Assembly: GCA_010909165.1 (NCBI GenBank)
Contig: MU008209.1
Span: forward strand, 494,423-546,687
Length of the DNA stretch: 52,265 nucleotides
Direction of reading: 5' to 3'
Origin: Anthoceros angustus
Taxonomy: Eukaryota > Plantae > Anthocerotophyta
In this document: positions 7,700 through 49,339 of the stretch, one piece after another
Numbering within the stretch: position 1 is the stretch's first letter
How the letters are laid out: every line of letters starts with the position of its first letter
Translations under genes and position numbers: made by a program
Notes under the pieces: model-generated
What the model was told of the DNA's origin: nothing
What the model saw: the letters and a program-made list of their open reading frames with translations, nothing else
Databases searched by the model: none

Positions 7700-8900
7700 C
7701 GGAATTGAAGCGATGCAATGTGACCACCTTCCGCATCAATCGACCAGCAAGGAGCCTATCTGTGAGGCGCCAGGCTCAAAAACCGAGTGGGACATGGTGG
7801 ATGCACTGTCAAGAGTTGCTTGAAGCCGGGCTCATTCGCCCTCTAGCTCCGACTATGCCGCCATGTGATGCCTCCCAAGAAGGACAAAGAACGGAATGTG
7901 GACAGAGAAGAGGATGTGCGGAGACTACCGTCCTATCAACGCTGACAGCCAGGATCGGTACCCCATGCCAACGCCGGAGGAGATTTTCGACAACATTGGC
8001 AAGTCTACCTACTTCTCGATTTTGGATTTGCCAAGGCTTCAACCAGGTGCCTGTTGAAGAGGACATCAAGAAGACAGCCTTCCACGGCTCTCAACAGCTG
8101 TGGAATGGCTGGTGATGCCCTTTGGCTTCAAGAACGCTACCGGTGACATTCCAGCGCGTAATGGACATAGTACTTGCAGGTTCAGAACCTCATGTGCTAC
8201 ATTGATGATGTCCTGGTCCACAGTGAGGACTTTGAGTCTCATTTGGTGCACTTGGAAGATCTGTTCAAGAGATTGCGAAGGCGCATTGACATGTCACCCG
8301 CCAAGTGTGAATTTGGCATGGACACCGTGGCATACCTTGGTCATAGGGTTGTGCCCGGCGCGTAATGCCTCATGCTGCCAAGGTACAGGCCATCTTGCAG
8401 AGAGCCCACAAACCTCTACTGCGAGCTTTCTCGCCTATGCAACTATTACCGAGTATACATTCGGGACTTCAATGCCAAGCCTGAATGACTTGCATGGAAG
8501 GATGTTGTTTGGGCCTGACAGAGAAGACCCAGCAAGCTTTCGACACGCTGAAACCGAGCTTGACGGAAGCTCCATGGCTGACTGACTTCTCAAGCCGTTT
8601 GTGGTACATACGACTGGAGCATCTTGGCCTAGGTAGCCCAGCAAGATGAAGATGGAAAGGAGCGGGTGGTTGCGTATGCTTCACGCAGCAACAATCGTGC
8701 TGAAGCCAACTCTGAGCTACCAAGGGGAGTGTCTAGTCTGTATGGGCGCGTTTAGGCCCCACCATGGCAAGCCCTTCACGCTGGTCATCGACCATCAGCC
8801 CCTCAAATGGCTGATGACCAACACCAAGTTGAGTGGGAAGCTTGCAAGGTGGGCCATGATCTTGCAGGACTATGAATTTCAAGTGGTGACCGGAGTCACA
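7700..8900 (+). pseudogene. pol: Family A reverse transcriptase and RNase H
   Basis: ELLEAGLIRP, RMCGDYRP, DRYPMPTPEEIFDN, WLVMPFG, CYIDDVLVHSEDFESHLVHL, AYASRSNN, KPFTLVIDHQPLKWLMTNTKLSGKLARWAMILQDY. Confidence 0.93.
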
Positions 8901-9099
8901 CACCAAAACGCGACACACTCTCTGGAATCCCGGTGCTAGCTGCGAAGATGTTACGACAGGACCAAGATGATGGAGATCTGCAGCATGGTGGCTGATGTGG
9001 TGGCTTTGACAGTGGGTGACTGTCCCGAGTATGGGACAATCCCGAATATGGGACAGCCCTTAGCATTGAGCACATATGCTGGGGACAGGAGGTCCAAGG

Positions 9100-10290
9100 A
9101 CATGGGAAGACTAAACTCTCCTATTTGTCCAAACAGACAATTTGATCAGCCATTGAGCACGGAGCAAGAAAGAATTCGCCAGGCTTCCAAGTATCAATGG
9201 CGTGATGGGCATTTGCGAGGAGGCTGACCAATGGGCTGGAACGATTGGTGCCACCACTGCGATAGGGAGCAGCTCATCCGTCGAGTGCACGACATGGGCC
9301 ACTTTGGAGTCAAGCGTGCGTTTGCTCCTCCCGCATTTCCATTGGCAAGGGATGTACGCCCAAGTCAAGCAGTGGCCTGCAAGGATCTGACTGTGGTGAA
9401 GACCTCCTTCACCATCCGGAACCCTCAGCTGCACCTTTGCCTATCATGGGACCGTTCTTTAGGTGGTCTTGTGACTTGTGGGTGAACTACCCAAGACACC
9501 ACGAGGAACGTGTACATTCTCGTCATGATGGAGCACTTCTCCAAGTGGGTGGAGGTGGTGGCTCTGACAAGAGCTCCAAAAGCACCGCCGTGCCTTTCTA
9601 ATGTGCCGAGTCGCTTTGGGAGTCACGAGTGCTTGACCGTGGTCCGAATTTCGAGGGGAATTCCAAGACCTACTGGATGCAGCGCTCATCGACCATCGCA
9701 GGACCAGCCGAGACCATCCTCAGGCTGATGGCCTGGCTGAACGGATGGCACAGACCATCAAGAAGGGTCTAAGGAAGCTCTGCCTTCAAATGCCCAAGAC
9801 AGAGTGGGACTTTGCTCTTCCTTACATCGCCATGGGCTACCGTATGAGTCGGCATGCCTCCTTGGCGCATTTCAGTCCCTACTTCTTGCTGTTTGGGAGG
9901 GAACCCATGCCGCCTAGCTCAATTGCCAAGCAACTCTATGAGGTAGTGGATCCGGATGATCCAAAGAATGTGGGCACATTATTGGTCAGCGTGCCAAGCC
10001 ATGCCGATGGCCATGGCTAATTTGAGGATTGCCCAACATCGGGACACCCTTAGATATGCCCACACCGGGCAGCCTTCGCACCCAAGCTCAAGAAATTTCG
10101 TGGGGACTTTGTTTACTTGCGTAAGGGGAGACACCCTTGACACCACCACCATTATGTGCTGCGAGTTCAGGAGGTCAAGGAGAATGGTGTGCTAGTGCTA
10201 CAAGGATCGATGGACGTACCACCAAGGATCACATGAAAAATTGTGCGCCTTGCCATTTGCCCAACTCGGATCCAACCATTGTCACCAGTG
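9100..10290 (+). pseudogene. pol: Family A DDE (rve) integrase
   Basis: VHDMGHFGVKR (HHCC region), YILVMMEHFSKWVEVVAL, HPQADGLAERMAQTIKKGLRK, WDFALPYIAMGYR, FSPYFLLFGREP, NLRIAQHRDTLRYAH. Confidence 0.92.
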
Positions 10291-10299
10291 ATTGGGTAC

Positions 10300-10435
10300 C
10301 TCCTGATTACCCATGCCGACGGGGAGGACAGACGACTGAGCTGATGTGTGTGCGACCACGGCGGGATACCACCTATTTTGCTTTGACCGCCTCCGAGGTG
10401 CCGAGCACTGTGTGGTCCCACTATGTGCTGCCTCT
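10300..10435 (+). pseudogene. Family A degenerate PHD finger at the integrase C-terminus
   Basis: PPDYPC...CD..GYHLFCF..EVPSTVW read across frameshifts; same position and pattern as the clearer family B PHD. Confidence 0.65.
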
Positions 10436-10477
10436 CCGGCCCTCAAAGACCGGCACACAAGCTTCAATGGCTGGGGG

Positions 10478-10811
10478 TAGGAGCAGATGCTCTCCAAAGA
10501 TACTTTGTTCTTGCAAGGGGACCTTTGACTCATACTGGATCGCCAAACTTTGGCCCACTCAGCAGAACAATCGACCGCCGAAGGGCAGGTAACAGAGGCA
10601 AGGAAGCTACACCAGATCCCGATGGGACATGGCGCCTGGCCGGATCCCATGGGACATGACAGCGAGGGATCCCCACATGACATGGATCCCACAGCCGGAT
10701 GCCGGGACTGTCCCAGCCTTGGGACATGGCAGTCCCACAGTCCTCACGTAAGATTGGTGGAGTGCCCGAGACAAGCTCATACGGGACACCGGACTCCCAA
10801 ACTTTTCACGC
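10478..10811 (+). repeat. Family A repeat B1
   Basis: Matches 11684-12059 (ATGCTCTCCAAAGATACTTTGTTCTTGCAAGGGGACCTT ... AAGATTGGTGGAGT ... CCCAAACTTTTCACGC). Confidence 0.85.
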
Positions 10812-11100
10812 TTTCACGACCGCCGAGGTTGCCAAGACCGCCTCAGGTACATGGCAGTCCACACCGGGACAGCCGGATCGCCCCTGCCATGGGACATGGT
10901 AGCCCCAATACCGAGCCGGATTGTCCCAAATGATGGTATGGCGCCCCACACCGGGACTGCCGGACTGCCCCAGCCATGGGACATGGCAGTCCCATGCCGG
11001 ACTGCCCAAATGATGGGACATGGCGCCCCACATGGGACATGTGATTGGCCACCATGGGACATTGCAGCCCCAGCCGGATCGCCGGGATCACGGGACCGTC
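10600..11100 (+). repeat. Array of GGGACATGG(C)AGTCCC-type hairpin motifs
   Basis: Many GGGACATGG copies; perfect GGGAC-N6-GTCCC at 10721-10736 and 10978-10993. Confidence 0.8.
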
Positions 11101-11112
11101 AGCACCACCCAA

Positions 11113-11666
11113 CGTCAAGACACAAGAACTAAATGCATGCAAAGAATGTGAACTCGATGTATGTTTGCTTTTATATACTACGCCTAGTTAGGCATTTTCA
11201 TTAACCAAGACATCAAACATATCCTTTATTTTGATTGGCCCATAGTCCAAGGATTCATTTCCTTTAAATACTAGTTATAGGAAATAGATCCGTTATGAAC
11301 GGATAACTAGGTAGGCTAGAAAGCCACTTAGTTTAGGTGTGAAACCAAAACCCAAACAAGGCACCTGATCAACGTGGAGGAGCACCACCAAGCGTGAGGT
11401 TGCTGCATCATGGCGCAAACATCAGAATCGAGTCGGAGCGTGAGATGATGGCGCGGAAATGAGGACCGTGGGGCAAGGAACGAGGGTAGTCTTCAAATCG
11501 TGCCGAGCCGTTAGGGAGGAAAGCACTTTGTGAACCAATCCATGGAATCAAATCCAAGATCTAGATTCAGGTTTTCATCTGCTTCTCCTACGCGCGCCAA
11601 GGCTCGATTTACTGACTCACCAGAAACCTGGCAAGAAATCTTCAAGAAATCTCGTGATTCCCGCCA
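11113..11666 (+). repeat. Family A 3' LTR-like repeat A2 (left boundary uncertain)
   Basis: 11437-11666 is homologous to 1-240; the start at CGTCAAGA (11113) is inferred by analogy with the family B termini. Confidence 0.6.
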
Positions 11667-11683
11667 TTGCATGGATCCCTTTA

Positions 11684-12059
11684 TAGGAGCGTATGCTCTC
11701 CAAAGATACTTTGTTCTTGCAAGGGGACCTTACTCATACCGGATCACAAACTTTGGCCAGATTCAAAGCTACAGCCCCTAATCGGATCGCCGATAAGGGG
11801 GCAACAGGAGGCAAGGAAGCTACAACCAGATCGCCCTGCTGGGACATGGCAGCCCACAATGGATCACGATCGCCCCAACAATGGATGGGCCGGCTACCGG
11901 GACCGGATCTGTCCAAACCATGATACATGGCGGGCCCCACACCGCGATCACGGATCGTCCACTTTGGGACATGGCAACCCACAATCCTCACAGTTTAAGA
12001 TTGGTGGAGTTGCCCGAGACAAGCTCATACCGGACACGGACTTCCCAAACTTTTCACGC
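11684..12059 (+). repeat. Family A repeat B2, lying distal to A2
   Basis: Direct repeat of 10478-10811. Confidence 0.85.
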
Positions 12060-12217
12060 CCACGCTGTGTCTCTATACATCCAACGGATCTCCACACACT
12101 CCTCCTTGTCTAGAAAATATGGCCCACTACCACGGCGCCCTACCAATTCCGAATCATAGCCCGCAGTACCTCAAAACATCCTATCCTCTAACCCAAAAAG
12201 AAACCCTTGGCCGCTGG

Positions 12218-12833
12218 CGTCATGTTGTTGTCAGGGGAAACAGAGCACCCAAGACTCTATGACCGGATATCGACTAGAGCATCCGGCATAAGCCCCGAAT
12301 AAAATGACTGGATATCGATCGGAGCATCTCGCATAAGCCTGGCGTCGTCAAGTGCTTGATGATGTCATGTACATGGCCCATGGATGGCTGCACATGTATG
12401 CCATGTATGCATGTGCCATGTATGCATGTATGTATGGAGATGAAGGATGACATGTGATGTGGTGTGATGTCATGGCGATGCAATCTATATGCATGATGCA
12501 TGTAAGGCGCAAGATGACGATATATAGATATATATTAGAAAATACATAAAAATCAAATCAAGGAAAAGGCGAATAGGTTAAACACATAAAATATTATTAT
12601 TTCAAGGCCAAGGAAAGTAGGATTATAAAGTGCCCACCATCGATATGGGTGGACACTTCATCGAGAACTCCGGGGTTTTGCCTATATATGTAGGCACCCA
12701 CCATGGATTCTTGGATTGTTGATGTTTGTCTTGTTCTAATAGACAGCCATACTGTCCTCACTGTGTCTTTGTCTCCTAGAGGTTCTTGTGGTTCGTTGCA
12801 TTGTCGTTGGGAGAATTTTCCATCTTGATTTCA
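12218..12833 (+). repeat. Family B LTR-like repeat A1 (copy 1)
   Basis: Homologous to 20909-21538, 29368-30015 (rc) and 51578-52201 (rc); ends TTTCA; TATATA at 12683-12688. Confidence 0.9.
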
Positions 12834-12835
12834 CC

Positions 12836-12848
12836 ACATCAACAATCC
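12836..12848 (+). promoter_or_regulatory. Putative self-priming PBS (Tf1-type)
   Basis: ACATCAACAATCC, 2 nt after A1, is the exact complement of GGATTGTTGATGT at 12713-12725, about 25 nt below the TATA box. Same pair in copy 2 (51563-51575 and 51681-51693). Confidence 0.75.
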
Positions 12849-13146
12849 TCTTGTTGGGGACTAAGATACTGATCGGAGGAGACGTGGCGCTGGAGATTGG
12901 AGGAAGAGGCGGAAGTCGCCCACCATCCAACCTGTGAGACAGCGATCCGAGAAGGTTGAGTGTTGCGTAAGGCACTAAGAGATAGGCTGATGTTTTTCGA
13001 TGGATGTGAATTTCGCCATTGATTATACAGCTTAGGTGTGGTAGTCTCACGATTGCCGAGTTAGCGTAATTGTTCGAGAAGAGCCGCACGTCTGGAGCCG
13101 TTTGTGGATAGAGGCGGTGGATGTACTTTAGCTGGTTGGGCTAACG

Positions 13147-14320
13147 GTGAAACAATTTGCCTTTGACAACATCCGCAAAGGGTCGTGCATAGGAGAAGTA
13201 ACCATTGATGGTGTTACGAGATCGTGGTGGACGAAAGGACACTGCCGCCTTCGAGAAGTGCACGACGCCTACTACTCGCCATTCAAGAGGACACCGAACA
13301 ATACAGACAACTACCACAAGGAGACAGCGATTGGAGCGAGAGTCCGCAAGAATGGAGCTTGAGTTCACACCAAGTAAGAACGATGTCTTCACAGGAAAAC
13401 ATGGAAGCATGTCTCTTGCATTTCGAGGAGAAGTTTCGTTGGGCAATGGCGGAAAACAAGATGAAATACAAGGACGAGTTCACTCGAGGATGGCGTTCAT
13501 GAAGATGTCATCCTACCTTGGTGAGGCTCTAATGTATTACGAGATGAGAAGGCCGGGATCCCGAAGGTGGCCGAGAAGAGAAGAAGCACGAGGCAGCCAA
13601 GAGGGCTGGTTCGACCGCACTCCACCGAGGACAAGCTCGAGCATCCGTGGACTTGATGTTCGCCAAGTTAACCACCATGTTTCCTACTGAAAAGATCCGA
13701 AGCCGAGGTTTTCTTTCGCCTAACGAGACATTGCGTGCATCTTACCTCGATTGAAGGTTCCGTGGAAGACACGGATGTCAAGACGATGAGGGAGGTCCGA
13801 GATCTTCATGGCATTGCCGACAAAGAAGGAAGGTGATGGACTGCATGGATGGGAGAGAGATATCGCTTGATAGACGCCTATCAAATTGCCGAGAAGGTGC
13901 TCAAAGGAGATGCGATGAAGCGGGCTTACTTGGAGGATCACGGAGTCGTGAAGGGCCCTTCGCAAAGACGGGTCCGGGACACGGAATTCCAGTTTGTTCC
14001 AAGGTACCAAGACGGAGCAGCCTCGTGACATGGCAAGCCCACATGTGCCGAAGGAGAGGCCAACAATGCAGTCAAGCGTGAAGTGTGGCGATGCTGGAGC
14101 GCAAGGCTCAATGCGACTACAAGCGTGGTCCAAGGGCAAGAAGCTGTAAGTCTTGTGGATGGGGTCACATGGAGGCAGCGTGTTGGGAAGCTCATCCAGA
14201 GTCAAGCCCAAGCTTGCATCACCGAGAAGGAGAAGGGCAAGGCCAAGTCGTAAGGCTCTCCTCGGGCAAGTGGAGGAGCTCAAGAAGGAGATGGCCAACA
14301 TGGCCAGCGTAAGCAGGAGG
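13147..14320 (+). pseudogene. gag: Family B gag with CCHC knuckle (copy 1)
   Basis: ELEFTPSKNDVFTGKHGSMSL.FEEKFRWAMAENKMKY; CKSCGWGHMEAAC at ~14145-14183. Confidence 0.75.
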
Positions 14321-14539
14321 ATTTTGTTCTCGACTGATGAAGATGAGGCGTTTGGCATGATGGCGGTGCGCAAGAAAAGAAAAGGAGTTGACTTTGGTGA
14401 AGGCGCATCACAAGGGAGTGCCGAACGGAATCGACCAAGATGCCGGAGAGTTTCCGTCGAGGAAAACTCCACGACACGAAGGTGTCAAGATCGGTCGAGA
14501 CGTTGAGGCGTTCGGACAAGGCCATGGAGGTGCCTGCAG

Positions 14540-14990
14540 AAGTCTTGTGGATCCGGGAGTGAAGGGCAACAACTTCAAAAACATCATGCGAGAATGGCCG
14601 AGAAAGGAGCTTGAATCCGCAGGATCTCTTCCTAGTATGGCGGTGTGGCGAGCATCCGATGCCGAGGAGCGAGGTGAAGGAGGTGTTGCCATGATTGATA
14701 ACACGGACGACGTGACCTTTGATGGCTATGCTCCGAACGCTTGTAGACACGGAGCGGATCCGGATCACTGGGAGCACGGTGAGGCACTAAAGTCAGGACA
14801 CAAGCTCGCTCCGAGCGACGTGAACCACACCGCAGTACCAAGGAACATGGGAATGACGAGGAGGCCCGTGAAGATTGAATTGAAGCTCGCACGAAGGATG
14901 CCATCATTGAAGTGAGATGTTTGGTCACGCAAAGACATATGATGTCTTGTCGGGTCGGAGGAACTCACCGCCCCGCCATGGGGTTGATCC
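14540..14990 (+). pseudogene. pol: Family B aspartic protease (degenerate)
   Basis: LVDPG (degenerate D[S/T]G) at ~14545-14560 and YDVL.G at ~14937-14955. Confidence 0.55.
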
Positions 14991-15369
14991 CTTGCACTCA
15001 AGCTTTCTAGACCATTACGGTGGAGGAGGAGATTTCACGCATGTTGCAATTCCTCTAAGGATGAATAGGAGTGGTGGCAAGAGCGGACGAGGATGACGCA
15101 GCGCCATGATTGCCACAAGGCTCGTGAGTGAGCATCGACATGAGATGTGGGAGGAAACGCAGAGTTATCCTCTCCGGAGATGCCAAGCCAAGAGAGAAGG
15201 GTGTGCTTAAGGTTGTGCGCCGTAATATTTGGATCAAGCGAGGGTTCGAGAAAACCATGAAGGAAGGAGGATCGACCGTGGAATCTCAGACACATGTCCC
15301 GAGAGGTCGATCCTGTATGAGGCCCGCTGTGGGAGATCGACGATCGACGATGCTCTAGTACGATGGAAG

Positions 15370-16200
15370 GTGGGCGTCAAGGCATCCATCTTGGAGCTCG
15401 CCGAATCGCAGCGGGGCTGGAAGGTGTTGCGTGGCGCCAAGATACGGCAATATACTGCGTGGAAAAGGATGAGAAGATTCGAGCCGCGCTAGGGTCGAAT
15501 CGTGTTCCAAGATCCAACATTGAGCGGAAGGCCGAGGTCGAGCAGGTGCTGACGTGAACTCGGTTGGGAAGCGGCTAGAAGCCTTGTCAAGCCCGGTGGA
15601 TATGCCGATCGCGGGATGGGAATGCAAGACATTTTCGGCAGGAGGCAAAGGTGAAGGCGTTGCTGGCCGAGCTCGCAAATCACGCGAGAAGTCCAGATTG
15701 CGAATCCACGATGTTGGTACATTCTCGAGAATGTGTGTGCACCATGGACAAACGCCCACCGTTAGGGCCTGTATGAAGAGATTCGGGCGTGGTTCGAATG
15801 AGTTGATCATGGACGCTGGTGGCTCATATGCACACAGCTCGCAGCATCGGACAAATGTGGTCGGACCGGAGGTGCTCGACAAAGAGAATTTAACGACCAA
15901 GGTTGTGGATGATATCCTAGAGTTGGGAAGGTGCTCAACAGTGAAGAGGATGGACAAGTTGCCATTTTACCCGTGAATCGAGTAGGGGAAGCCAGAAGGG
16001 CATGGCCAACTCGTGAGCACACCGCAATCTTATGCCTTCGCCGGAGGAGATGGTGTGATTCGGATTTGAAGGGAATGAGCTTGAGAGCTCAATGTTGAGG
16101 AACGCGAGCAAGCGATGGGCTTTGCCAAGAAGGACACTCGGACCATGGGCATCACAACTGCAAGATGCAGGATGCTTGGATGCATTTGACTACCGAGGTG
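15370..16200 (+). pseudogene. Family B C5-cytosine DNA methyltransferase (uninterrupted, frameshifted)
   Basis: ILEL-(fs)-IAAGLEGV..YCVEKD (motifs I-II, 15388-15470); VDMPIAGWECKTFSAGGKG (motif IV, GWEC 15614-15625); WYILENV 15715-15735 (motif VI); IMDAGGSYAH; ELNVEEREQAMGFAKKDT 16085-16138; RMLGC ~16170. Confidence 0.9.
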
Positions 16201-16379
16201 GCGGTCTGTGCTTGTTCCAACTTGCGCAAGGAAGCGAAAGCCTTCCTCCAACTACAGGATAAAGAGGTTCCAAAGGAAGATGAGTCGCTGGAGAGATTCA
16301 AGATGGCGTGGATACCGAATCGCCTACCAAGAGTGTGACGAAGAGGTTCATGTATGGCACATTGCGTAAGATGTGAGCC

Positions 16380-17630
16380 GGAAGATAAGGAAAATCATCA
16401 ACATGCTTGAGAAAAACAAGGGTGCTTTTGCATTCGTTGGAAGGAGCGGTAGGTATGAGAAGATCAAGTTCAAAGTAGTGACGACTCATGAAGAGCCCGT
16501 TTCGTAAGGAGGCACGCCTCCAGAATGGGAGATTGTTGACAAACGCCGTCAAGACTTGTTGAGCGGGTTGATAAGAAAATCAAGCTCTCAATATGTCGCG
16601 AGCCTACCGCTCAAGAAGGATGAGAACGGTGAATGGAAGGACAGGAGGATGTGTGGCGATCACCGACCTCTAAACGAGGTGACTCCTATGGAGCGGTACC
16701 CCATGCCTACTCACGAGATTTTCGATGCCATAGGTAAGGCAAAGTTCTTTACCGCTTGGACTTGTGCTTCAACCAAATTGTGATTGAAGAGGACAAGTGC
16801 AAGACCTGGGGAAGGACCAGCTTTGGGAGTGGAGACAATGCCGTTTGGGCTGAAAATGCTTCTATATATTTCCAAAGAATTGCGGATCTGGAGCTGCAGG
16901 GGCTGCCATTTGTGCGTTGTTACATAGATGACATCCTGGTTTTCAGTGAGACAATCGAAGAACATATGGAGCATCTAGAGATATTGCTACAGAGGCTGTC
17001 AAGCTCAGGTTTGAAAGCTCATCCTAAGAAATGCAAGTTTGCTTTCCAGCAGATCGAGTATCTGGGGCATGAGATAGTACCAGGAGGCATCATGCCTCAG
17101 CTGGCTAAGGTGCAGGCAGTGATGCAAATGCCTAGACCAAAGGATGTAGCTGCTCTTAGAGCCTTCCTGGGTTTGGTGAACTATTACAGGAGGTTTATGA
17201 AGGACCTCGCCCACGTGTAAACCTCGTATGAGCTGAAGAAAGACATTGTGTGGAAATGGGACCAAGACCGAGTTGGCTGCAAGATCTTCGGACCGCCAAG
17301 GTAGAAGCCTATGTTGGCCAGCCGAATTTTGATCACCCTTTCACCGCATGCATCGGAGCACCGCGGAATTGGAGCGTTGTCACAACATGGTGCGATGGTG
17401 TTGAGCGAGTGATAGCTTATGCAAGCCGATCTAACAACTCATCAAGTGAACTACTCCTCATATGAGGGAGAGTGTCTTCCGCGTATGGGCGCTCGCATTT
17501 CGTGGTCTATCCGTATGGAAGGCTTAATCGGTCACAGATCACCAGCCACTTCATTGGTGATGACCAACATGAAGTTGAGTGGTAAGCTAGTGGGCGCTGC
17601 CATCTCGAGTACGATATGGAGATCGTGCAG
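16380..17630 (+). pseudogene. pol: Family B reverse transcriptase and RNase H (copy 1)
   Basis: LPLKKDENGEWKDRRMCGDHRPLN, RYPMPTHEIFDAIG, CYIDDILVFS (YIDD at 16921), KCKFAFQQIEYLGH, LRAFLGLVNYYRRF, AYASRSNN, NYSSYEGECL. Confidence 0.95.
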
Positions 17631-17829
17631 GCGCATCACAATGCGATGGGCTAAGAAAATCACTGGAAAGTGACAAGGATGTCACAGAGCTCGGCGATGA
17701 GGGGCACGAGATGGTGCACCCAGCCTTCATGGCACTCATGGCCGTGGATAGATGATCATGAAGAAGGACATGTGCCGACAGAGTCCGTGGATGTTTGGAG
17801 ACATCCTCAAGCCTGATTCTGAAGGAAGG

Positions 17830-18960
17830 CACAGGTTCGAATGATCAAGGCTTGGCTAAACTCGAGGCGGGATACTCATGGGAAGATGGTGAGTCACCGT
17901 AAGGAGAACTCGTAAGGAAAGTACCAAGTCCCGAGGAAAGAGGGCATAGTGACCAAGGTGCACGAAACCTGGCCACTTTGGTGTGAAGAGGACACACCAC
18001 ATGTTGAAGAGTACGACAGTGGGATGTATGCGATGTCGAGAAGGTGGTGGCTAAGTGTGCATGTGATGCGAAAGCTAGATTTAACACCTGTGATGTGGTG
18101 TTGCACTCCCTACCAATGGGGCTATTCTTTAGATGGTCGGTTGACCTTATGCCAGAGCTTCCTCTCACAAAGCAAGGTAACCGACATTGCATGGTCATGA
18201 TTGAGCATTTCTCTAAGTGGGTTGAAGTGGCGTTCTTACCTCAGAGAACCTCGCATTACACCAGCAGAGCTTTTCTGCAGTGTGTGCTCAGCCGATTTGG
18301 GAGCTGCGCAGAGGTGCTCTGCACAGGGGTAACGAGTTTCGAGGTGAATTCCGCACCTTGCCGGACAGAGTCTCATTGATCACGGAGGACATCGAGGATC
18401 ATCCACAGCCGATGGCTGCGTAAAGGCTAGTGCACCTTCAAGGATGCACTAAGGAAATCTTGCATCGTGGAGCCCAAGTGTTGGGATGAATTGCTCCCTT
18501 ACATCGTGTTGGGGTACAGTGTCGCAAGCGCTCTTGGAAGTTTCACCATACTTTTTGTTATTCGCAACGTGTTGCCGAATGTGGTGAAGGACACTTACTC
18601 CATCCTTGATGGAGCAAAGATGCAAATGTGTGCAGGAGGTTCAAGCCGAGTATTTCAAAGAATTCTTCCCATATGGACAATTTGGTCATGGGCCCAAAGA
18701 TCGGGACCAGTGAGGTATGCTTATACGCTGGGGCTCGTGGAAGCCCAAAGCAAGTTTGCATCCGAGATTATGTGTACTTGCAACAGCGCAAGCACGTTAG
18801 ATGTCGACGTGGAGGCTTATCTTGAGAGTTGTGCAGGTTGGTGAGCAAGGTGTGGTTGAACTTGAAGGAAGAGATGGCAGAAGGTGCAAGGAACACATGA
18901 AGCATTTGGCTCCATGCCATTTGCCTGATCTGGATACACGAACTGTGCCTCAGACCTGGA
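17830..18960 (+). pseudogene. pol: Family B DDE (rve) integrase (copy 1)
   Basis: VHET...H, KQGNRHCMVMIEHFSKWVEVAFLP, SRFGSCAEVL, HPQ(A)DG, WDELLPYIVLGY, GRRCKEHMKHLAPCHLP. Confidence 0.92.
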
Positions 18961-18974
18961 CGCCACCAGCAGAT

Positions 18975-19112
18975 TTGCCCTGTGAGGAGTGTGGGCACAC
19001 AACTGACGAAGAATTCATGTTGCTATGTGACAGGTGTAACCGTGGTTACCATCTGTTTTGCCTCAAACCGATCGGAAAAGGTTCCAAGGAGAATGGCTAT
19101 GTGAGCAGTAAT
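18975..19112 (+). pseudogene. Family B PHD finger (C4HC3) fused to integrase (copy 1)
   Basis: PCEECGHTTDEEFMLLCDRCNRGYHLFCLKP...VP.GEWLCEQ. Confidence 0.92.
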
Positions 19113-19479
19113 GTGCTAAGTGTGAACGTGGCTCTTCAAGGTGGTACCGAGGTTGTCTTAAATTCACACGTTAAGTCGAAAGTGGGTACAGCAGTTGAAG
19201 AAGGACACAAGATGCTTGGGGCCAAATTACAAAATGGGATCGCACATGCTAAGGCGGTAGTTGTTGCGAGAAGCCGCTCGCATGTGCAAGGAATTGTGAG
19301 AAGAGGAATTACGCAGAGGATCGAGCGACAAGGGTCTAATTCTACCGGAAACGAGAGCGAAATTGGGCACATAGCGAGGGAGCATCTCATTTTGGAAGAG
19401 GAACCTTTGCATGCACAGACCGATCGCTGGTTGAGAATTCCTCACACAGTGTTTCTAAAGGTGGTTTCACCGCTTTGGA

Positions 19480-20640
19480 GTGGATAGGAGCGCCATGGTC
19501 GCCCGTTTCACGTGCATAGGAGAAGGCGAAAAGTCTTGCCCTATCCGCACCACGGAAGGTGAAGCGCCAAGAGGAAGTGCCACCGCCAATCAAGCGCAAG
19601 AGGGGACGACGCAAGCATCCTACCGAACATGGAAAGCCGGAGTTTGAGGCAAGCCGATCTCAAGTGGAGCGACAGTGGCGAGCAGGAGAACACCACGATC
19701 GCCTCGCGGGAGCAACCGCCCACCTCCCAAGAACTGAGCGCCTCCTCGAGCTCCTACTGTACACCATGTATGTCGGCCGCATGCTGAAAATGTGGTTGCA
19801 CCTAGGGTGGTAGTTCTCACCGCATGCAGCCATGGAGGAGGTCTCGCACAAGCGAGGTGGAGATCGAATCTGTGTTCTGTGCTATGACCGCCAACTCAAG
19901 CAAGGTTTCGGATGGAACCCCAATGTGGATGATGAAGATGCGGTAAGTGGAGCATCTTCTACTCCGCCAAGATGACCGAACAGGTATTCCACCGAAGTTA
20001 TGACGAGCTTCACATCTTCATCAGTATGTTGAGGAGCATCATGACAAAGGGTGGAGCATTATCCCAGGAACACCGGATTTGTTTGAGCTCCAGCTCGGGT
20101 CACAAGCGCTGCCCCCGGACCGGACAAGTTATGAGAGGGTGCATGGAGGAAGTTGCATCACTTCCAAATGCATCAATGGTTTGATGGGATGAGGTTGCCA
20201 GAGTTCGTTGATGGGAGACACATACCCTCGCCGCTTGATTTTTCTCAAAGAGTGGTTTCGAGTTTTCCATCCGGCATGTGGCATCATGTGGTAGGGTGGC
20301 CTCAGCTTTACATTCGACCAACAAATTGAGGACCCCTCATGTTGATCATGCTTGGACTCGAGAGGAGAAGAATGCTTCAACTCTCGTGAGGCTCGCCACA
20401 CACATCTACACTTCGAAGTTACCGCTTTTCAATTACCCAACACAGAAGCTTACGAGACATGGATGCCGGATGGATGGCATACATCCTGCTTTCACCGCAG
20501 AAGCGCTTTGTGGAAGAACAGTTGATCTCTCCGATTCAAGCCGCGAGATTACAAAACAGAGGCACAAGAAGATGATGGATGATGAGGATCAAGATGACGC
20601 CATTCCTCCTCCTCGGCGAACCACCGCTGTTGGACAAGCG
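19480..20640 (+). pseudogene. Family B extra sense-strand ORF remnant of unknown function
   Basis: Coding-like peptides shared with copy 2 (rc ~30330-31440), e.g. HFQMHQWFDGMRL and HHVVGWP; no family recognised. Confidence 0.45.
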
Positions 20641-20736
20641 CTGGTGGGGACGCAGGCATTGTGTTTTCTAGGCCAAGATGGTCTAGACAATTTTGTGGGA
20701 AACCGTGGCTAGGCCTCCAAGTTTCCTGTGGGGTCG

Positions 20737-20907
20737 TTTCAGCCCGGCCTGCCTCTTAGGCACTCCCCTTTTGTAGCCTTGCCTTGGTCATAGGCCAAGG
20801 ACAATTTGGCTAGGTTGCTCGGCCAAGGCCAAGGAGATCGCAGCAGTGTGCTTAGTGACTTAGCTTTGTAGACAGGCTAGGTAGGCATGCATGCGGTCGC
20901 CACGACA
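20737..20907 (+). repeat. Family B repeat B1 (copy 1), abutting A2
   Basis: Matches 21541-21726 (TAGCCTTGCC(C)TTGGTCATAGGCCAAGGACAATTT ... GGCCAAGGAGATC ... CTTAGCTTTGTAG ... GGCTAGGT); ends GACA. Confidence 0.88.
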
Positions 20908-20908
20908 C

Positions 20909-21538
20909 CGTCATGCTGTATGGGAAACAGAGCACCTAAGACTCTATGACCGGATATCGACTAGAGCATCCCGGCATAAGCCCGAATCGAAATGACTAGA
21001 TATCGATGGAGCATCTCGCATAAGCCCCGGCGTCAAGTGCTTGATGATGTCATGTACATGGCCCATGGATGGGGCGTACATGACATGCATGCCATGTATG
21101 CATAAGTGCCATGTATGCATATATGCGTATGGAGATGAAGGATGACATGTGATGGACATGTGGTGTGATGTGTCATGGCGCATGCAATCTATATGCATGG
21201 TATGCATGTAAGGCGGTGCTATGACGCATATATAGATTTATATTAGAAAATACATAAAAATCATAAATCAAGGAAAAGGACGAATAGGTTAAACACATAA
21301 AATATTATTATTTCAAGGCCAAGGAAAGTAGGATTATAAAGTGCCCACCATCGATACGGTGGACACTTCATCGAGAACTCGGGGTTTTGCCTATATATGG
21401 GCACCCACCATGGATTCTTGGATTGTTGATGTTTGTCTTGTTCTAATAGACAGCCATACTCCCCTCGCTGTGTCTTTGTCTCCTAGAGGTTCTTGTGGTT
21501 CGTTGCATTGTGTTGGGAGAATTTTCCATCCCGATTTC
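20909..21538 (+). repeat. Family B LTR-like repeat A2 (copy 1)
   Basis: Direct repeat of 12218-12833. Confidence 0.92.
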
Positions 21539-21540
21539 TG

Positions 21541-21726
21541 TTCTTTCACGCCCTCGGCCTGCCTCTCTCAGGCACCCACTTTTAGCCTTGCCCTTGGTCA
21601 TAGGCCAAGGACAATTTGTGGCTAGGTTATTGCTCCCGGGCCATAGGCCAAGGAGATCGCATGAAGCTAGTGCTTAGAGACTTAGCTTTGTAGAGGCTAG
21701 GTGCAGTATGCGGGCCGCCGCTGACA
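21541..21726 (+). repeat. Family B repeat B2 (copy 1), element terminus
   Basis: Direct repeat of B1; ends TGACA; homology to copy 2 stops here. Confidence 0.88.
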
Positions 21727-21949
21727 CGCCTCCTCTAAAATCAGATCCGCTGTTGCGCCTAGCCTCCCGGTATGGGGTTCCTCGCCGCTCCTCCCGCCAC
21801 GCCTCCGATCCAGCGATTCTCCCCAAAACCTCCACTCACCGCCGCCGCGGTTTCTTGGCGTGCCAAGGCCTCTATAGGCCCTATGCCCGTTATTCCGCCT
21901 CCTCATCGCCGGACAGCCCACACCGTGCCCGCCTCCACGCCTGCCTCCC

Positions 21950-22480
21950 GCTTCTCGATCACCACTTGGGGATAGGCCCCATTCGCTCAAAGAACCACCG
22001 TACACGCCTGCAAGGCCAAGATGTGCAGCCAGAGTTTCGCCTCCCTCTTCCTTTTCCCTTGAAACCTCCCACCTCATCCAATCTTCCGTAGAGGCGCATT
22101 CCCAACTGCTGGAATCCTTCCCTGAATCCTCCTTATACTCCTCCTCCTCCACCTTGAGGTCTCTGACCGATTTCCAGCTATGAAAGGCAGACACGGCTTC
22201 CAACTCCGTTAGGCATCCAGAATGCTCAAACACATGAATCAAAAAGGGTGAAATCAAGGAAGGCCGAGGGGAGGGGAGAGCACCGCCTTCTCTTCACAAG
22301 CTCTTTCAAAATCATCCTCCCCAATCGATCTGCGTCCCCTTGACCACCTCATGAAGAAAGACCAGGAAGTGGTCCGCCATGTGATTTAACTTTCGATTCT
22401 GAAGGAAACATAAAATCCACTTGGCCAACCCAACCAGCTGTACAAACACGAGCTGGCGAGTCACCCATCCATTGTTAACT
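21950..22480 (-). pseudogene. Fragment of a retrotransposon accessory ORF (xDW-motif type)
   Basis: Minus strand reads VKGTQIDWGRMILKEL...(fs)ISPFLIHVFEHSGCLTELE, similar in pattern to VDWATIHEQRL...FVSTFLVDTYIEGG in the family C LTR ORF. Confidence 0.4.
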
Positions 22481-22865
22481 CTTACTTCCTGTGCCTAGCG
22501 CTGCTGCCGTAGAGCCTTCGAGTTTTCTTCCTCTGCGAGTCGATCAACAGGCTCCTATCTTCCGATTCTTCCCACCCATACACGGCTCGGAAGAGCCCCA
22601 AATCCCAATTGCGGCCTCTTCCTGGCCGCCTCTCTTGCTTTTGGTTCCCTGTACACACCGCACTAATGTCGGGTCAGAGCCATTTCTTCTCCATGAAATC
22701 TAGGGCCCGGGTTGCACAAGATTGTTAGCTTAACCTTCCAGTTGGTCCATGTTGGGCCACCGTATGGTGGAATTTCGCTGCTCGAGGCGCCATCTCCCTT
22801 CCTCCTTCGCCTTCAAAAACCCCGGCCTCCAGACGGTCGTGAGAGGGAAAAGCACCACCTCGCTA

Positions 22866-25800
22866 GGAACGAAAAGTTTGGGCAACTGGTTTAAGTGAGT
22901 TGTTTTGAACAGTCCGAATGCTTTTGATAGAAATGGTTTGGTGGAAACATGCGAGAAATGTTTTTGTTCCGATTGAAGCCGGAGTCAGGATGTTGGGAAG
23001 GCAGAGGATACTTAGGGAAAAGAAACGGATCAAATGACCTTCTAGTGAGGAGGGTAGGAGACATATGTGAACGGTAGGAGATGTCCTCTGGTAGGAGGTA
23101 TCCTACCACCAGAGAACTCCTACCACGTAGTAGGGGAGAGAACTCCTACCCCATAGGTATGGGTAGGAGAATGTCCCACCACCGTAGGTGGCCCAGCTAG
23201 CGCTTTTGATGACCCACCAGGAGTAGCTCCTACCACGGTAGGAAAAGGGTGAAGGCAATTAAGCCAAGGAAGTAGCTTGAGGTTGCCGCACAAGCTGATA
23301 GGCTTGCAGAGGCAAAGGCCTGATTATTGGGGACCACCACCAAGTTTGAGGGAAGGCAAAGTAATTTGCCACATGTGTGGAAGAAGTGAGACATGGGCTC
23401 ATATTGCTGAGATTTTGCAAGAAGGAGGACTGCTAGGTAGAGATGTGTGGCAAGGGTTGCAGGAAGATGGGCCAAGTGCCCGTAATGGTGGAATTGTGCA
23501 GATCCGTGGCTCTAGGTTGGGAGCTCAAGATGCAGAGAGGAGCAGAATTGGTGCAAGGATGGGAGCGAGGAGCTCATGTTGAGGGTGAGCAGCCACAAGG
23601 GTTGCAAGAGGAGGCCATGGCGGTGCCGAGGCACATGGAAGTGCTCAATGGAGTCACGATGGAGGATGGCCGGTGTTGAACTAGGAAAGGCCGTGGTAGA
23701 GCACTCACAGCTGAATTTGTAGATGGGCTGCAAGATGGAGGTGTGGCCAAACCATAGGAAGGCGCGGTGCGCAACATGGTGAAGGGATCACAACGGGTGT
23801 GCATCATGACGGAATTTGCAATGCAAGTCAAAGTGAAGGGAGGCCGTGTGGTGGCGAGAAATGGGTAGCAAGGAGGGTTGATACGAGATGTTGTTGAGGT
23901 GAGGAGTTCACCGGGAATAAGTTCATTTTATTCGTGAAGAGCCAATTGGTGTGTTGGACAATGAATGTAAGAACTCCAGAGTTAAGCGCCCTAGGGGTGG
24001 ATCAGGTGGATGATGGGGCACCTTTGTGTGAGGTTATATTTGCGTAAGTCACATGAGAGCCAATTGGGAGGTGTTTGAGGGTGCACCCACACGGAGGAGG
24101 TGTAGGGTGGTAGGACGAGGGCATGGCACCCCTACGAGGAGGAGGTGCACCCCACGCGAGGGAGTGTGTAGGAGGGGCACCCCATGTGTATGTATGTAAG
24201 GGTACATGTGGGCAGGGGTCCCCATGTATGTAGGGGTGGCAAGGTGACCCCTATGTATGGTAGTGGTAGGATGAGGGTAGGGACCAAGGGCCCTACATGT
24301 AGGATGTAGGGTGCAGGCTCCTCACAGGTAGGTAGGGATAGGTAGGATGAGAGTGTCTCCACCAGGGAGTGGTGAGGTCTCCCCACCGAAGTGGGTGGGA
24401 CTTGGATACTTGGAAGTACAAGGTAGGTAAACCTAGGAAGTTGTTAAAAAGGGTCAGATATGCAAGGTTGTGGATAAATAGGGTATATTAGGAAATAACC
24501 ATAAATATGTGGTAGGTAGTGTAGGGTGCATAACAAGTAGGGTGTAGAGGAGGTGGAAATAGCACATGGCAAGGAATCAAGCATATCAAGAGTGTACTGT
24601 GGCCATGCAAGCTGTGTAGGGAGTGGCACCTAGGAAGCCCGCGAGGAATTGCAGGAAGAGCTTGTGCATGCAAGGAAAGCTAGAGCAAGGACTTGGTGGG
24701 AACGCTGTGGTGTGTGCAAGGAGAAGGAGGTGTGCGTGCATAAGGAGTTGTGTGTGAAGGGATTTGAAGCGCAACTGTGAAGAGGGCAAGGGCGCTGAAT
24801 TTTTGTGCCTAGGACCTTGCAAGTGAGGGATTTGGGCGCATAAGGAGTGTATGGTGAGGACATCAAGTTTGAGCTAGGTGGGACCGTGGAGTGAAGAGGA
24901 AGTAAGTGGAAAAGGGCTGAAGTTGCTCTCTTGGTGGATTTTGTGGCGAGTGAAGAAATCTCGCAATTGTGTGTAGACACCGAGGTGACAACTAGGTGGA
25001 AACGAGCACGCGTGCCCAAGCTTGTCTTGTTTGTGCGCTTATTTTGAAGGTACAAGATGGTGAAAGCGCGCACCTAAGAAGGGCAAGTTGGTTGCTAGGG
25101 AGCAAGAGGCAGGAAGCGCATGTGGAAGGCACTTGGTGGCCATGGTTTGCCGACCCAACACATCCGATGTATATGGAAGGCCGAGAGGATGACTCGAGGA
25201 GGAAGAGGAAGGCATGGAGCAAGATCCGCCACGGAGACCTTCTTGCAAAGTGGAGAGTGGGAGGCGGTAGGGTAAGAAGTTGACCCACGTCCGTAGGAGG
25301 TGTAGAGGGTGGCCCTACATCCGTAGGATCACCGGTGCGACGGCATCTAGAGAGTAATTGGGTTGGTGGTAGCTTGGAGTGGGCTCATTGCTTGGGGAGA
25401 CTTTCTTTAGAGGAGGACAGTATTAATGCTTGTCAACCCAAGAGGGTGTGTTGACTAGCTAGATAGGAATGTTGACAGAGCCATTAAGGCTCACATAGGT
25501 GAAGTTTGCTAGAATAGAATTTTACCCAAGATGCTTGGATGTCGAACTTAAAGTCGACGGTAGGATACACTAAAATAAGGAGTGAGGCGGCGGGAGGGGA
25601 GGTGTATGTGAGGACCTCCCTATAAAAGGAGGGGAGCTTGTGAAGTAAAATTATCGCGTCTTGCGCTCCCAAACTCATGAGTCCTTTGCTCCTTGTGAAG
25701 GAATTTCGTGCGTGCAAGCTAGCAGTCTCAGTAGAGAGGGAGTTTGCGGTGGTCGGAGTGCTTGGCGGAGGCTCGCTCCTTGCGGGCGCCTCTGCAGTTG

Positions 25801-27712
25801 CTCCTTGTGAATGGTTCTTTGTGAAATTGCTTTGCTTTGGGTGTGTGGCGATGCCCAAGGAACTCTCGGCTTGAGGGTAGACTACAGGAAAGACTCCTGG
25901 AGGTTCTCAGTCACAGTGCAAACTCAGCGCCCAAGGAAGAACTTGTTGGCTTGTAGGACCCAGGCGGTTGTCAAGGGCGAGCTAGGGCCGGTGAGCTTGA
26001 AGTAAGGTTAGATTAGGAGGATGAGGAGTTGAGTTGAGGTGAGGTGAGTGTTGAGGAGAATGTGGAGCTGAATGTTGAGTAGAGGAGTAGGTAGAGATTA
26101 GGAGTAAGAAGAAGGCCCAAGTCGAGCCTAAGGGAGGGGTCCCAAATCACCAAACCGAGGGAGGCTGGGCTAAGGTCTCAAAATCACGGGTGGAGAAGTG
26201 TGAGAGGGGTCCCTATGCGTGGCGATGGACCTACCCGTGGTGGGACCTGATGGGATGTCGTTGTAGGTCCGAGGCGGAGATCGACGGAGGCAGTGCGGAG
26301 GTGTCGTGCGCCCGTGTGGAGTTTTGTGGGCGCGCCAGTTGTAGTTGGGCGCCGGGGCACGGAAGTTGGAGGCCTTGAACTAGGCGAGGTAACCTATCTT
26401 GCCAGTGCGACCCTACGGTGGTAGGATGCGCCCTGCGTTGGGATAGGTGTCTCCTCCCCACGTAGGAATGAGGGTGTGTGGCCCACGGTGCATTGGATCT
26501 CCTACAACTCTCCTACAAGTGGTAGGAGGGTAGGCCCTACAATTGTTTGTTGTTGGTTGTAGGTCACAGGCGGCGATTCGACGGGCGGTCACGGGAGGCT
26601 GTCGAGTTGGTGGTTGAGGATGTGCCAATTGTGGGAAGGCAATGGGAAAGGAATAGTGGAAGATCACGGGGTGGTGAAGTCGCGTTGCAGCGTAGGGGGT
26701 CCCCTGTGTAGCCCAACCCGACTCACCGTGTGTGTGGACCTAGTGGGGGTGTGTTGTAGGTCGAGCGTGATTATGAGCACACGGTGAGGCGTGGTTGGCA
26801 TGAGTGAGTTGAGGTTGCTCCGGTGTGAGGGAGCTTGGGGTGTGAAGAGGTGTGTGGTTTGTGCCTTGGATCGGTGACACGACAAACAAGAGTCTCATGG
26901 GACGAAACCTATTGTACTTAGCGGCGATTGGGATAAGTGTGGCCACTGGGGTGAATCTGGAAGCCGGATCCGCCTCACACTCGCTCTCCCCCCCGCCCTC
27001 TTCGCTGGTCCCCCGCCTCGACGGCCTCTTTTCCTGCGACTCGCCCGGATGGTTTCCCCTCCGGTCGCCGCCGCCCGCTGATCTCAGCGCCACAACTTTG
27101 CACAAGAAAACGGTGATTTGGCATGGACCTGATTGCATGCGTGCTCCACTGCTGCAGCCTTGCACGCCGCTCCTCACGGAAATTGCGACCTCGCGATGTC
27201 AGTGTCCTTTCTTCCAGGCCCGCCCGGTGGTACGGCCAGCCTCGCCACTAGGGTTGTGAACTCCCACAGTGCATGCGCCCGCCTCCGGCCACCGTGGTGG
27301 AACTAGCCACCTCCCTACTTGACTGCGCAACTGTGGCAAAATGTAGGCACCCCTAGCATATATAGACACTTTCTTATTTCTAAAATTACCAAAACCCAAG
27401 GACCCTATATCTAACCTTCCTAACTAGGGTCAAAACCCAAGGACAAGAAAATGTTATTATCACCATGGGCCAAGGACTCTTTCCGTATAAAAGGTCTTAC
27501 CCGGACGATTCCAAAGCATTCCGCTATACTAAGACACCAAAACAAAAAAAATTCATTCATCCTGACAGTTCAGAGAAGGGTTAGGACACATGTGATACTC
27601 CACAATCGGAAAAGCTTTGGCATGTTTCCTCCAAACCATTTCTAACCAAAAAAAAATCGGACATGTTCCAAAACAAACCAACTTAAACCAGTGGCCCAAA
27701 CTTTTGCGTTCC
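22866..27712. mobile_element. Region bounded by ~105-bp imperfect terminal inverted repeats (MULE/foldback-like candidate)
   Basis: 22866-22975 (GGAACGAAAAGTTTGGGCAACTGGTTTAAG...) is an inverted match to 27605-27712 (...CTTAAACCAGTGGCCCAAACTTTTGCGTTCC). No TSD or transposase motif found. Confidence 0.55.
23040..26990 (+). repeat. Possible degraded solo LTR related to family C
   Basis: GGTAGGA-rich sequence like the start of the C LTR; CCTATAAAAGGAGG at ~25619; exact 18-mer TGGGATAAGTGTGGCCAC at 26929-26946 also near the C LTR 3' end (38942-38959). Confidence 0.35.
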
Positions 27713-27888
27713 ACAACCGCCTCCGCCACCACCACCCGAGCCGCCTCCACCGCCTCTTCCAGCTCCTGACATGTTGTGTGTTGATGTGTGCATGACCTAG
27801 AGGGTTATGACGACGTGGATAACGGGGTAATCTATGTGGTGGTGACCACATACATGGTAGGGCTACACTTACCTATAGCTATGAGGAA

Positions 27889-29180
27889 TTAGAGGGTCTG
27901 GGGGTCTTCCCCAAACAAGTTGGAAATAGATTCTAAAATATGTTCTACAGGTTCTGGGATAATCATCAAACCAAAGACTGGATCGCAACGGGACACATCT
28001 AGGTTCTTGGGTGCTGTATCTGATGTATTGTCAAGGTAAAGCTCGAATTTTGCTGTTAATTGTAGCAATTTGAAGTTCAAGATACTGATTTGTGCACTAA
28101 TGCATGCTATGTCCTTCCTATGTTGTACCTTGTCGTGATATGCTTGGTCCTCTATTAATGCTATATGAAATTTCAGGTCTCTAAGTTCATGTGGGGAAAT
28201 GTGAGACACTGGCTGTGAGGTGAATGAAGATGGACGGCAAATTGGCAAAATCTGGCCTAGGGAATTGTGCTGCTGAGAGGGACAGTAGACAAGGGTCTGT
28301 GATGGACAGCCTGTACAAAAGACTGGTTTGTTCTTCTTCCTTCCTGTCTTGTTGATTTAAGAAGAAAATTAGTTATTGTGCCTTGCAGCACGCTTCCATT
28401 TGCTGAGTGCTTGCCAATGTTGTCTCAAAGGGTTCTATAATTCTCCTTCTCATCCTATGTCCAAGGAGTGCTGATGTGTGGTGGATTCCACACTGGGCAT
28501 GGTGGTTGGACACTGTCCATTCAGAAATTTGGCGATTAGCACACCAAATTCCAGATTGATTGAAATAGGGATTGCAATGCCTTCAGGATTGAGAACGCTG
28601 GTTGCCTTTTATATTTCAGAGCCTCCATTTGGGTGGTCTGGTTGGACCATAAACGGGGCACTGAATTATTGCCATAAGGCATGATGCGCTCCATTGCTCT
28701 GATACCAACATTTAGCAATGATCGAGAATCATCTGAGAGCAGAGCAGACGCACTCGCAAGAGCACACAGAAGAAGTGATCGTTATAGGTTTAATGAAAGT
28801 ACATAAAACAAAGGGTGTAAAAGTAACCGCCTATAACCTAACAGTAAATATTATTAAGTTATTCTAAAGCTGCTTAACCTAATGAAACGATAATAGGTTA
28901 AGCTACCTAGCCCTAAAAGCCATTAATTAATTAGTTATTAATAAACCCCGAGTAGGTATGACCAAAAACGGGTTTACCAATACTTTTCTTTGAATTCTCC
29001 TGTGTAGGATGACCCGACAAGTGAAGAGGTAAGGACCATCTGGAATGGAAGGGAAGAACATTTCTTTGGGACAATCGTTGAACGAGACTCTGTAAGTAGC
29101 TCGTTAAGAATCTAGAAATTCTACACTGCTCTTCTAGATTTGAATCCGAAGTATCACCTGTGGGGGACACAGGTGGTGCA
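27889..29180 (-). mobile_element. Truncated 5' end of a tRNA-iMet-primed LTR element (LTR candidate, PBS, short ORFs)
   Basis: TGGTATCAGAGC on the minus strand (28707-28696) is followed 1 nt later by ATG (MERIMPYGNN); AT-rich LTR-like block 28711-29150; no second LTR seen. Confidence 0.45.
28696..28707 (-). promoter_or_regulatory. Primer-binding site, tRNA-iMet
   Basis: GCTCTGATACCA is the reverse complement of the canonical TGGTATCAGAGC. Confidence 0.75.
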
Positions 29181-29367
29181 TGTCACAGCGCCAGCCTGCA
29201 GTGCATGCCTACCTAGCCTTACAAAGTCTAAGTCACCAAACACCAGCTCGCTGCTGATCTCCTTGGCCTCGCCCAGGAGCAACAATCTTAGTTATAAATT
29301 GTCCTTGGCCTATGACCAAGGACAAGGCTAAAGGGCTGGGTCTTAAGAGACAGCCTGTCATGAACAG
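29181..29367 (-). repeat. Family B repeat B2 (copy 2)
   Basis: Reverse-complement match to 21541-21726; plus strand starts TGTCA at 29181. Confidence 0.85.
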
Positions 29368-38992: not shown

Positions 38993-38996
38993 TTTT

Positions 38997-45072: not shown

Positions 45073-45073
45073 A

Positions 45074-49331: not shown

Positions 49332-49339
49332 TATTCATC

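Follow-up and report, generated by a model that had tools for sequence, protein, structure and literature searches.

Ty3/gypsy retrotransposons are, by the textbook rule, bounded by two equal long terminal repeats (LTRs). PAT, Ngaro and TOC1 elements of the DIRS order carry split direct repeats in the arrangement A1-internal region-B1-A2-B2, with an internal junction that juxtaposes two element ends; they have a tyrosine recombinase in place of a DDE integrase, and their descriptions mention no target duplications. Two published elements come closer to the one analyzed here. KnitGypsy-Dnmt3 of Klebsormidium nitens combines a DIRS-type repeat structure with Gypsy domains (de Mendoza et al. 2018, PMC5890265, Fig. 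4c legend), in a paper that also draws SymbioDIRS elements as A-coding-B-A-B, and in Gypsy-7a_cRei of Chlamydomonas reinhardtii, a PHD Gypsy active in laboratory strains, the right LTR is reported to end in 8 bp that are absent from the left one (Craig et al. 2022, PMC9940879). How the layout arises is explained in neither paper. Here we describe two decayed copies of a Ty3/gypsy-type element with this split-repeat layout in a 52,265-nucleotide stretch of the Anthoceros angustus genome (GCA_010909165.1, contig MU008209.1, positions 494,423–546,687; hereafter the window). The initial annotation of this DNA inferred an undescribed replication route; the layout itself is not undescribed, having been printed for KnitGypsy-Dnmt3 in 2018 (PMC5890265). 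DIRS-like repeats accompany a Gypsy pol in both; that of KnitGypsy-Dnmt3 includes a DNMT3-like segment, and the window element is colinear with relatives bearing a putative DNA methyltransferase (DNMT). Unlike the present analysis, the KnitGypsy-Dnmt3 paper does not analyze a primer binding site (PBS), polypurine tract, palindrome or target duplication. New here are a predicted self-priming PBS adjoining the A1 end, a G-run adjoining the B1 start, a flush A2/B2 joint, a palindrome at the B1/A2 junction and 4-bp target duplications in relatives.

The window was compared with itself by BLAST, and the junctions were aligned and read directly to set the repeat boundaries. The A1...B1-A2-B2 layout is present in both copy 1 (12218–21726, plus strand) and copy 2 (52201–29181, minus strand), with E values from 1e-22 to 0. 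Repeat A1 of copy 1 (12218–12834), comprising a promoter part and R-U5, starts with CGTCA and ends with GATTTCAC; the 3′ end of the copy consists of B1 (20734–20907, ending in GACA), A2 (20909–21538) and B2 (21539–21726), the last of which starts directly at the A2 end in a U5/U3-type joint and closes with TGACA at 21726. The corresponding minus-strand repeats of copy 2 are A1 (51578–52201, with a TGTCA start at 52201), B1 (30016–30200), A2 (29368–30015) and B2 (29181–29367, with a TGACA end at 29181). The outer ends are therefore CGTCA...TGACA in copy 1 and TGTCA...TGACA in copy 2, and the B1/A2 junctions read GACA-C-CGTCA (20904–20913, plus strand) and GACA/TGTCA (about 30019–30011, minus strand), respectively. 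Within copy 1, A1 (12218–12832) matches A2 (20909–21538) at 90% identity (E 0), and B1 (20745–20896) matches B2 (21555–21713) at 83% (E 3e-31); within copy 2, on the minus strand, the values are 88% for A1 (52192–51582) against A2 (30003–29380) and 79% for B1 (30196–30036) against B2 (29358–29203; E 1e-29). Neither copy has the two equal LTRs of Ty3/gypsy elements, the 5′ end carrying A only and the 3′ end B-A-B, and the same is true of three relatives at other loci (L003, L007 and L010, below). Both copies instead have the order of split direct repeats by which PAT and Ngaro elements are defined (PMC4157794). Insertion of a solo A into B was rejected as an origin of the 3′ end, the 5′ A1 being the same repeat.

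The two copies are 81–86% identical along their length. Substitutions between A1 and A2 amount to 4.5% in copy 1 and 10% in copy 2, with three to four small indels per 100 nt; copy 2 has no counterpart of 15321–16453 of copy 1 and is interrupted by an unrelated 14.6-kb element that is not of the same family (34745–49335, plus strand). A comparison of the flanks of copy 1 with those of copy 2 found no similarity between them, and the copies therefore stem from separate insertions, the unit being so arranged beforehand. They are two old, independently inserted Ty3/gypsy copies, now dead. The layout and its coordinates in the initial annotation are borne out by these comparisons, as is its proposal that the unit moved whole; one segmental duplication, which it had named as a possible refutation, does not account for two copies whose flanks share nothing. 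Its expectation that B follows A2 and never A1 also held, with no B-like sequence after A1 in either window copy.

The internal region of copy 1 (12835–20733, plus strand) is a decayed gag-pol, as seen from Pfam matches on open reading frame (ORF) pieces and from colinear tblastn alignments with intact relatives. It encodes, on the plus strand, reverse transcriptase (RT) and RNase H at about 16376–17586 (RVT_1 match at 16738–17217), a DDE integrase at about 17918–18637 (rve piece at 18008–18376, 27.9 bits, under the family cut-off of 32.6) and a PHD finger at about 18816–19139 (Pfam PHD). The ~1.6 kb between the PHD finger and B1 (19140–20730) holds ORF pieces at 19520–19810, 19936–20181 and 20239–20709 and no recognizable domain. 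A phmmer search of 1.8 billion representatives with a piece spanning the integrase C terminus and the PHD finger gave 844 matches, the long ones being polyproteins with RVT_1, RT_RNaseH, Integrase_H2C2, rve and PHD above threshold, some with weak DNA_methylase matches. In tblastn against the window, proteins of the relatives align colinearly with both copies and with a second family lying upstream (family A, below). The pol order RT-RNase H-DDE integrase (rve plus H2C2 zinc finger, the latter seen in the relatives) is that of Ty3/gypsy elements, and the Pfam RT_RNaseH and RT_RNaseH_2 matches of the relatives are Ty3/gypsy-type modules. Tyrosine recombinase (Phage_integrase) gave no match on any ORF piece of copy 1, on either strand, nor in the intact relatives or their extra ORFs. 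From the RT, rve and PHD matches, the colinear relatives and the absence of a recombinase domain, the window element is therefore a Ty3/gypsy-type retrotransposon using a DDE integrase. In this it departs from PAT, Ngaro and TOC1: an rve domain stands in place of the tyrosine recombinase of the DIRS order, together with H2C2, a Ty3/gypsy-type RT-RNase H, a canonically placed PBS and polypurine tract and, in relatives, 4-bp duplications. Gypsy-7a_cRei is likewise a Gypsy element with a PHD finger and possibly shares the layout with a B of 8 bp, a comparison made by description only; its domain list, unlike that of the window element, places the PHD finger before the integrase (PMC9940879).

Two window segments, 15608–16180 and 4041–4442, are colinear in tblastn with relatives, two of which have weak DNA_methylase matches; Pfam searches of the window pieces gave no methyltransferase match. 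The segments align to the interval between RNase H and integrase of the relatives, which is DNMT-bearing in P0031 and P0028. In both window families the segment lies upstream of RT, so that its place within pol varies among members of the clade.

Tf1 and Tf2 of Schizosaccharomyces pombe are self-priming Ty3/gypsy elements, in which the RNA 5′ end is complementary to a PBS directly after U5. A similar arrangement is predicted for the window element. In A1 a TATATAT box (12683–12689, plus strand), kept in 4/4 A copies, lies 30 nt upstream of a predicted RNA 5′ end, GGATTGTTGATGT (12713–12725, plus strand), which is perfectly complementary over 13 nt to a candidate PBS, ACATCAACAATCC (12836–12848, plus strand), located 1–2 nt past the A1 end. 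The two segments pair in the predicted RNA fold. Both are identical in copy 2, where the PBS motif is at 51575–51563 (minus strand), and the pairing holds for both window copies. The complement recurs in distant clade members, with 12 nt in L010 (1378–1389 and 1575–1586) and 9 nt in L003, both at offset 0. Judged from sequence, priming would proceed as in Tf1, and the end of A would be the end of U5. Tf1, unlike the window element, has two ordinary LTRs.

The polypurine signal stands at the other repeat. A GGGG run (20730–20733, plus strand), a polypurine tract remnant, directly precedes B1 of copy 1; GGGG also precedes B1 of family A (10473–10476), and in five relatives (L003, L006, L007, L008 and L010) a run of G6–G8 lies exactly at the B1 homology boundary. 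The start of B reads as the start of U3. The PBS and polypurine tract have the placement expected of a Ty3/gypsy element only if the LTR is read as B+A, since the G-run adjoins B1 and not A2. The opposite assignment, A+B, was rejected: no two-LTR rotation of it gives A-genes-B-A-B, and the PBS and G-run would stand on the wrong sides. If A alone were the LTR, the right-hand B2 would have to come from a peculiarity of cDNA completion in this lineage that involves no circle, for example if the plus strand, before integration, jumped end to end to the released B stub or to the left end. Such a step would produce flush joints without host end joining and a single product type, matching the uniform layout, and it would suit a short B, as with the 8 bp described for Gypsy-7a_cRei (PMC9940879). 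The position of the G-run before B1, and not before A2, means however that plus-strand DNA should begin at B, and B in the window is as long as 170–375 nt. To our knowledge, an end-to-end polymerase jump of this kind is undocumented for LTR elements, and we regard an LTR made of A alone as quite improbable.

Loci encoding relatives were fetched and labeled L001–L010; they supply the young copies that the window lacks. In L003, from Haematococcus lacustris (GCA_030144725.1), A1 (9548–9977) and A2 (17117–17546) are 100% identical, and A2 is immediately flanked on both sides by a 41-nt B. A GGGGGGAA run directly precedes B1, the B1/A2 junction reads GACA-GC-TGTCA, and a 4-bp duplication, CGTG, lies outside the A1 start and the B2 end. 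L007, on a metagenome contig with host-gene flanks, has a 38-nt B, G8 before B1, the palindrome TGACA-GC-TGTCA and a 4-bp duplication, ACCC. In L010 the A repeats (624 nt) and the B repeats (233 nt) are each 100% identical between their copies, with G7 before B1 and the same palindrome; a metagenome scan with the A-end motif of this locus returned no match. L006 has G7, a 219-nt B and a 22-nt palindrome, and L008 consists of two tandem 795-nt units on a cyclic assembly path, with G7 before the unit, the palindrome at unit position 209 and the A/B joint present. L002, L006 and L008 cannot show genomic ends because they are cyclic or tandem assembly paths, and L004 and L009 are too nested for the layout to be read. 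A search with the 228-residue integrase-PHD piece gave one distant match in Logan, whose contig (L001) has no window DNA or informative repeats. As a control, a chromodomain Gypsy within the L003 locus has ordinary 173-nt LTRs, a polypurine tract adjoining TG and a 5-bp duplication. The layout is common to a lineage of green-plant and algal elements with a PHD finger ending the integrase.

Two junctions of these relatives bear on how the layout arises. In L003, L008 and L010 the A2/B2 joint is exactly the end of A1 followed, with nothing between, by the start of B1, and the B1/A2 junction is the perfect palindrome TGACA-GC-TGTCA (TGACAGCTGTCA) in L003, L004, L006, L007, L008 and L010. The B1/A2 junction brings the two integrated ends side by side. 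Ends of the Ty3/gypsy TG...CA type, TGTCA...TGACA, are present in the window, and 4-bp duplications accompany them only in the young relatives L003 and L007. The initial annotation had coupled integrase-type ends with an rve domain and no tyrosine recombinase, which the end reading and domain searches support; the target duplications it suggested seeking at the A1 start and B2 end are found in these two relatives, with none recognizable at the window copies.

The relatives also bear on whether the layout could be a one-off rearrangement, a segmental duplication or an assembly artefact that was subsequently copied. The window is indeed a nest of decayed repeats, and L002, L006 and L008 are cyclic assembly paths, as an artefact would lead one to expect. 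Such an origin is nonetheless very hard to credit, given two window copies with unrelated flanks, the same layout of family A in unrelated sequence, young independent copies that carry target duplications, found both in a Haematococcus assembly at chromosome level and on other contigs, and the published Klebsormidium layout (PMC5890265).

We think it somewhat more probable than not that the inserted copy represents a joined two-LTR form in circular permutation, the LTR being B+A with the integrase site inside it. We infer the joined two-LTR intermediate, and its cleavage at the palindrome by the DDE integrase, from the layout, the positions of PBS and polypurine tract, the flush A/B joint, the palindrome, the target duplications of the relatives and the lack of a recombinase. 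Reverse transcription from the PBS and polypurine positions would yield a linear cDNA, B-A-genes-B-A, its LTR being built as B then A with the polypurine tract at the start of B and the self-priming PBS at the end of A. The termini on which integrase acts, TGTCA... and ...TGACA, would then lie not at the LTR edges but back to back inside the LTR, as the palindrome at the B/A boundary. The cDNA ends would be joined, U5 end to U3 start, to give the A2/B2 joint, and integration, with duplication of 4 bp of target, would follow the opening of the joined form at the palindrome in the LTR adjacent to the PBS. Two routes to the joined form may be envisaged. In one, a two-LTR circle forms and integrase would cut one of its palindromes; in the other, integrase would cut the left palindrome of the linear cDNA and insert both resulting ends, while the host would join the two free blunt ends. 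A cut after each CA would leave recessed CA-3′OH ends with a 2-nt 5′ overhang, the usual product of 3′ processing by integrase. The order A-genes-B-A-B therefore points to a U5/U3-joined form opened at the PBS-side palindrome, the only rotation that gives it. The initial annotation is supported in that B cannot be placed beyond the 3′ repeat by canonical LTR reverse transcription alone, and the unusual step is more likely to lie at integration than at cDNA synthesis because the PBS and G-run stand where ordinary reverse transcription needs them.

A precedent for the proposed cleavage comes from retroviruses, since the integrases of prototype foamy virus (PFV) and human immunodeficiency virus type 1 (HIV-1) cut palindromic LTR-LTR junctions in vitro (Delelis et al. 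2005, 2007; PMC1180852, PMC1905944). The palindrome of the window element's relatives resembles that of PFV and HIV-1 2-LTR circles in being formed by attachment (att) ends, and a DDE integrase would, on our reading, likewise cut after each CA. In the retroviruses the palindrome is the circle junction itself, and its cleavage returns the usual linear molecule; here, with the palindrome internal to the LTR, cleavage would lead to a permuted insertion.

Several observations weigh against the joined two-LTR form. The arrangement A-B-A-genes-B, expected if the circle opens at the other palindrome, is not seen in any copy, and the sole reason we can offer for this bias is that such copies cannot replicate further. 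The young A2/B2 joints are flush in all of only three cases (3/3), although host end joining should sometimes be imprecise. In the window, the A2/B2 joint differs by 2 nt between the two (old) copies, the G-run is short in copy 1 and lost in copy 2, and no target-site duplication is recognizable at either copy, both being old. The B/A boundary of family A has no evident TG/CA palindrome. Among the relatives, the outer ends of L010 lie a few nucleotides off the palindrome and have no clean duplication, and the last 143 nt of A2 in L007 are inverted relative to A1 (14932–15185 versus 8692–8933), which in a metagenome assembly may be either an assembly error or a real inversion. Finally, L005 (Haematococcus, 9880–22455) contains, as a large inverted duplication, a family copy that runs only to the B1 end (...GCGCGACA, then flank) and lacks A2-B2; this copy is either an A-genes-B insertion, which would fit a double cut, or a B1/B2 recombinant.

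Flush young joints are expected equally from a templated route of the DIRS/PAT kind that operates without a recombinase. Here the RNA would run from inside A1 through B2, the outer parts would be regenerated from B1/A2, the A2/B2 joint would be copied from the parent in each cycle, and the DDE integrase would perform the insertion. The invariance of those joints fits this scheme, and so does a repeat layout equal to that of PAT/Ngaro (PMC4157794) and of SymbioDIRS. It would, however, leave the canonically placed PBS at the A1 end and the polypurine G-run at the B1 start without a role, and no candidate primer site is found 3′ of B2; a recombinase is lacking, and the 4-bp target duplications point to an integrase acting on linear ends. 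We consider a templated route unlikely, and the PBS and G-run positions do not speak for PAT/Ngaro-like replication. Whether insertion through the joined two-LTR form describes the lineage as a whole is a further step. That the entire green-algal and land-plant clade of DDE-integrase Ty3/gypsy elements integrates obligatorily via U5/U3-joined cDNA, opened at an att palindrome inside the LTR, is a tentative generalization that we hold to be possible and short of probable.

Although the clade departs from the rule of two equal LTRs, it retains DDE integrase, PBS and polypurine tract; the ends that reverse transcriptase makes and those that integrase uses are thereby distinct. Whether retroviruses use cleavage of a palindromic junction as a pathway has been under debate since the 1980s. 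Should the joined-LTR route be true, these elements would be a natural case of integrase working chiefly by cutting such a junction, and the two-LTR form that is a dead end in retroviruses would be a productive intermediate. The split repeats of recombinase-bearing PAT/Ngaro-like elements would, in that case, have a convergent origin. LTR finders that expect paired LTRs will mis-bound or miss such elements in plant and algal genomes. Gypsy-7a_cRei, which is active in laboratory Chlamydomonas (PMC9940879), may share the layout with its 8-bp B, and the mechanism would be testable there if so.

Family A, the second family in the window, is represented by a 3′ end at 10477–12059 (plus strand), with B1 at 10477–10811, A2 at 10812–11683 and B2 at 11684–12059 (self-BLAST, 74%, E 1e-42; alignment). 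It has the same B1-A2-B2 layout in sequence unrelated to copy 1, with a pol that is colinear with that of copy 1 and an A1 that lies beyond the window. Its repeats measure about 335 nt (B1), about 870 nt (A2) and about 375 nt (B2). The pol of family A ends near 10350, and B1 lies within about 170 nt of the PHD finger.

Pfam searches of ORF pieces from family A, the element nested in copy 2 and the spacer between the copies (21727–29180) gave almost no matches. The spacer has a strong GC skew (0.36) at 24001–26000, where the ORFs are without domain matches. The nested 14.6-kb element has a weak RNase H match at 42993–43625 and no similarity to family A or to the family of copies 1 and 2. It is bounded by 4.25-kb direct repeats (34745–38996 and 45077–49335) that differ by 7% substitutions, and terminal repeats of such length are unusual.

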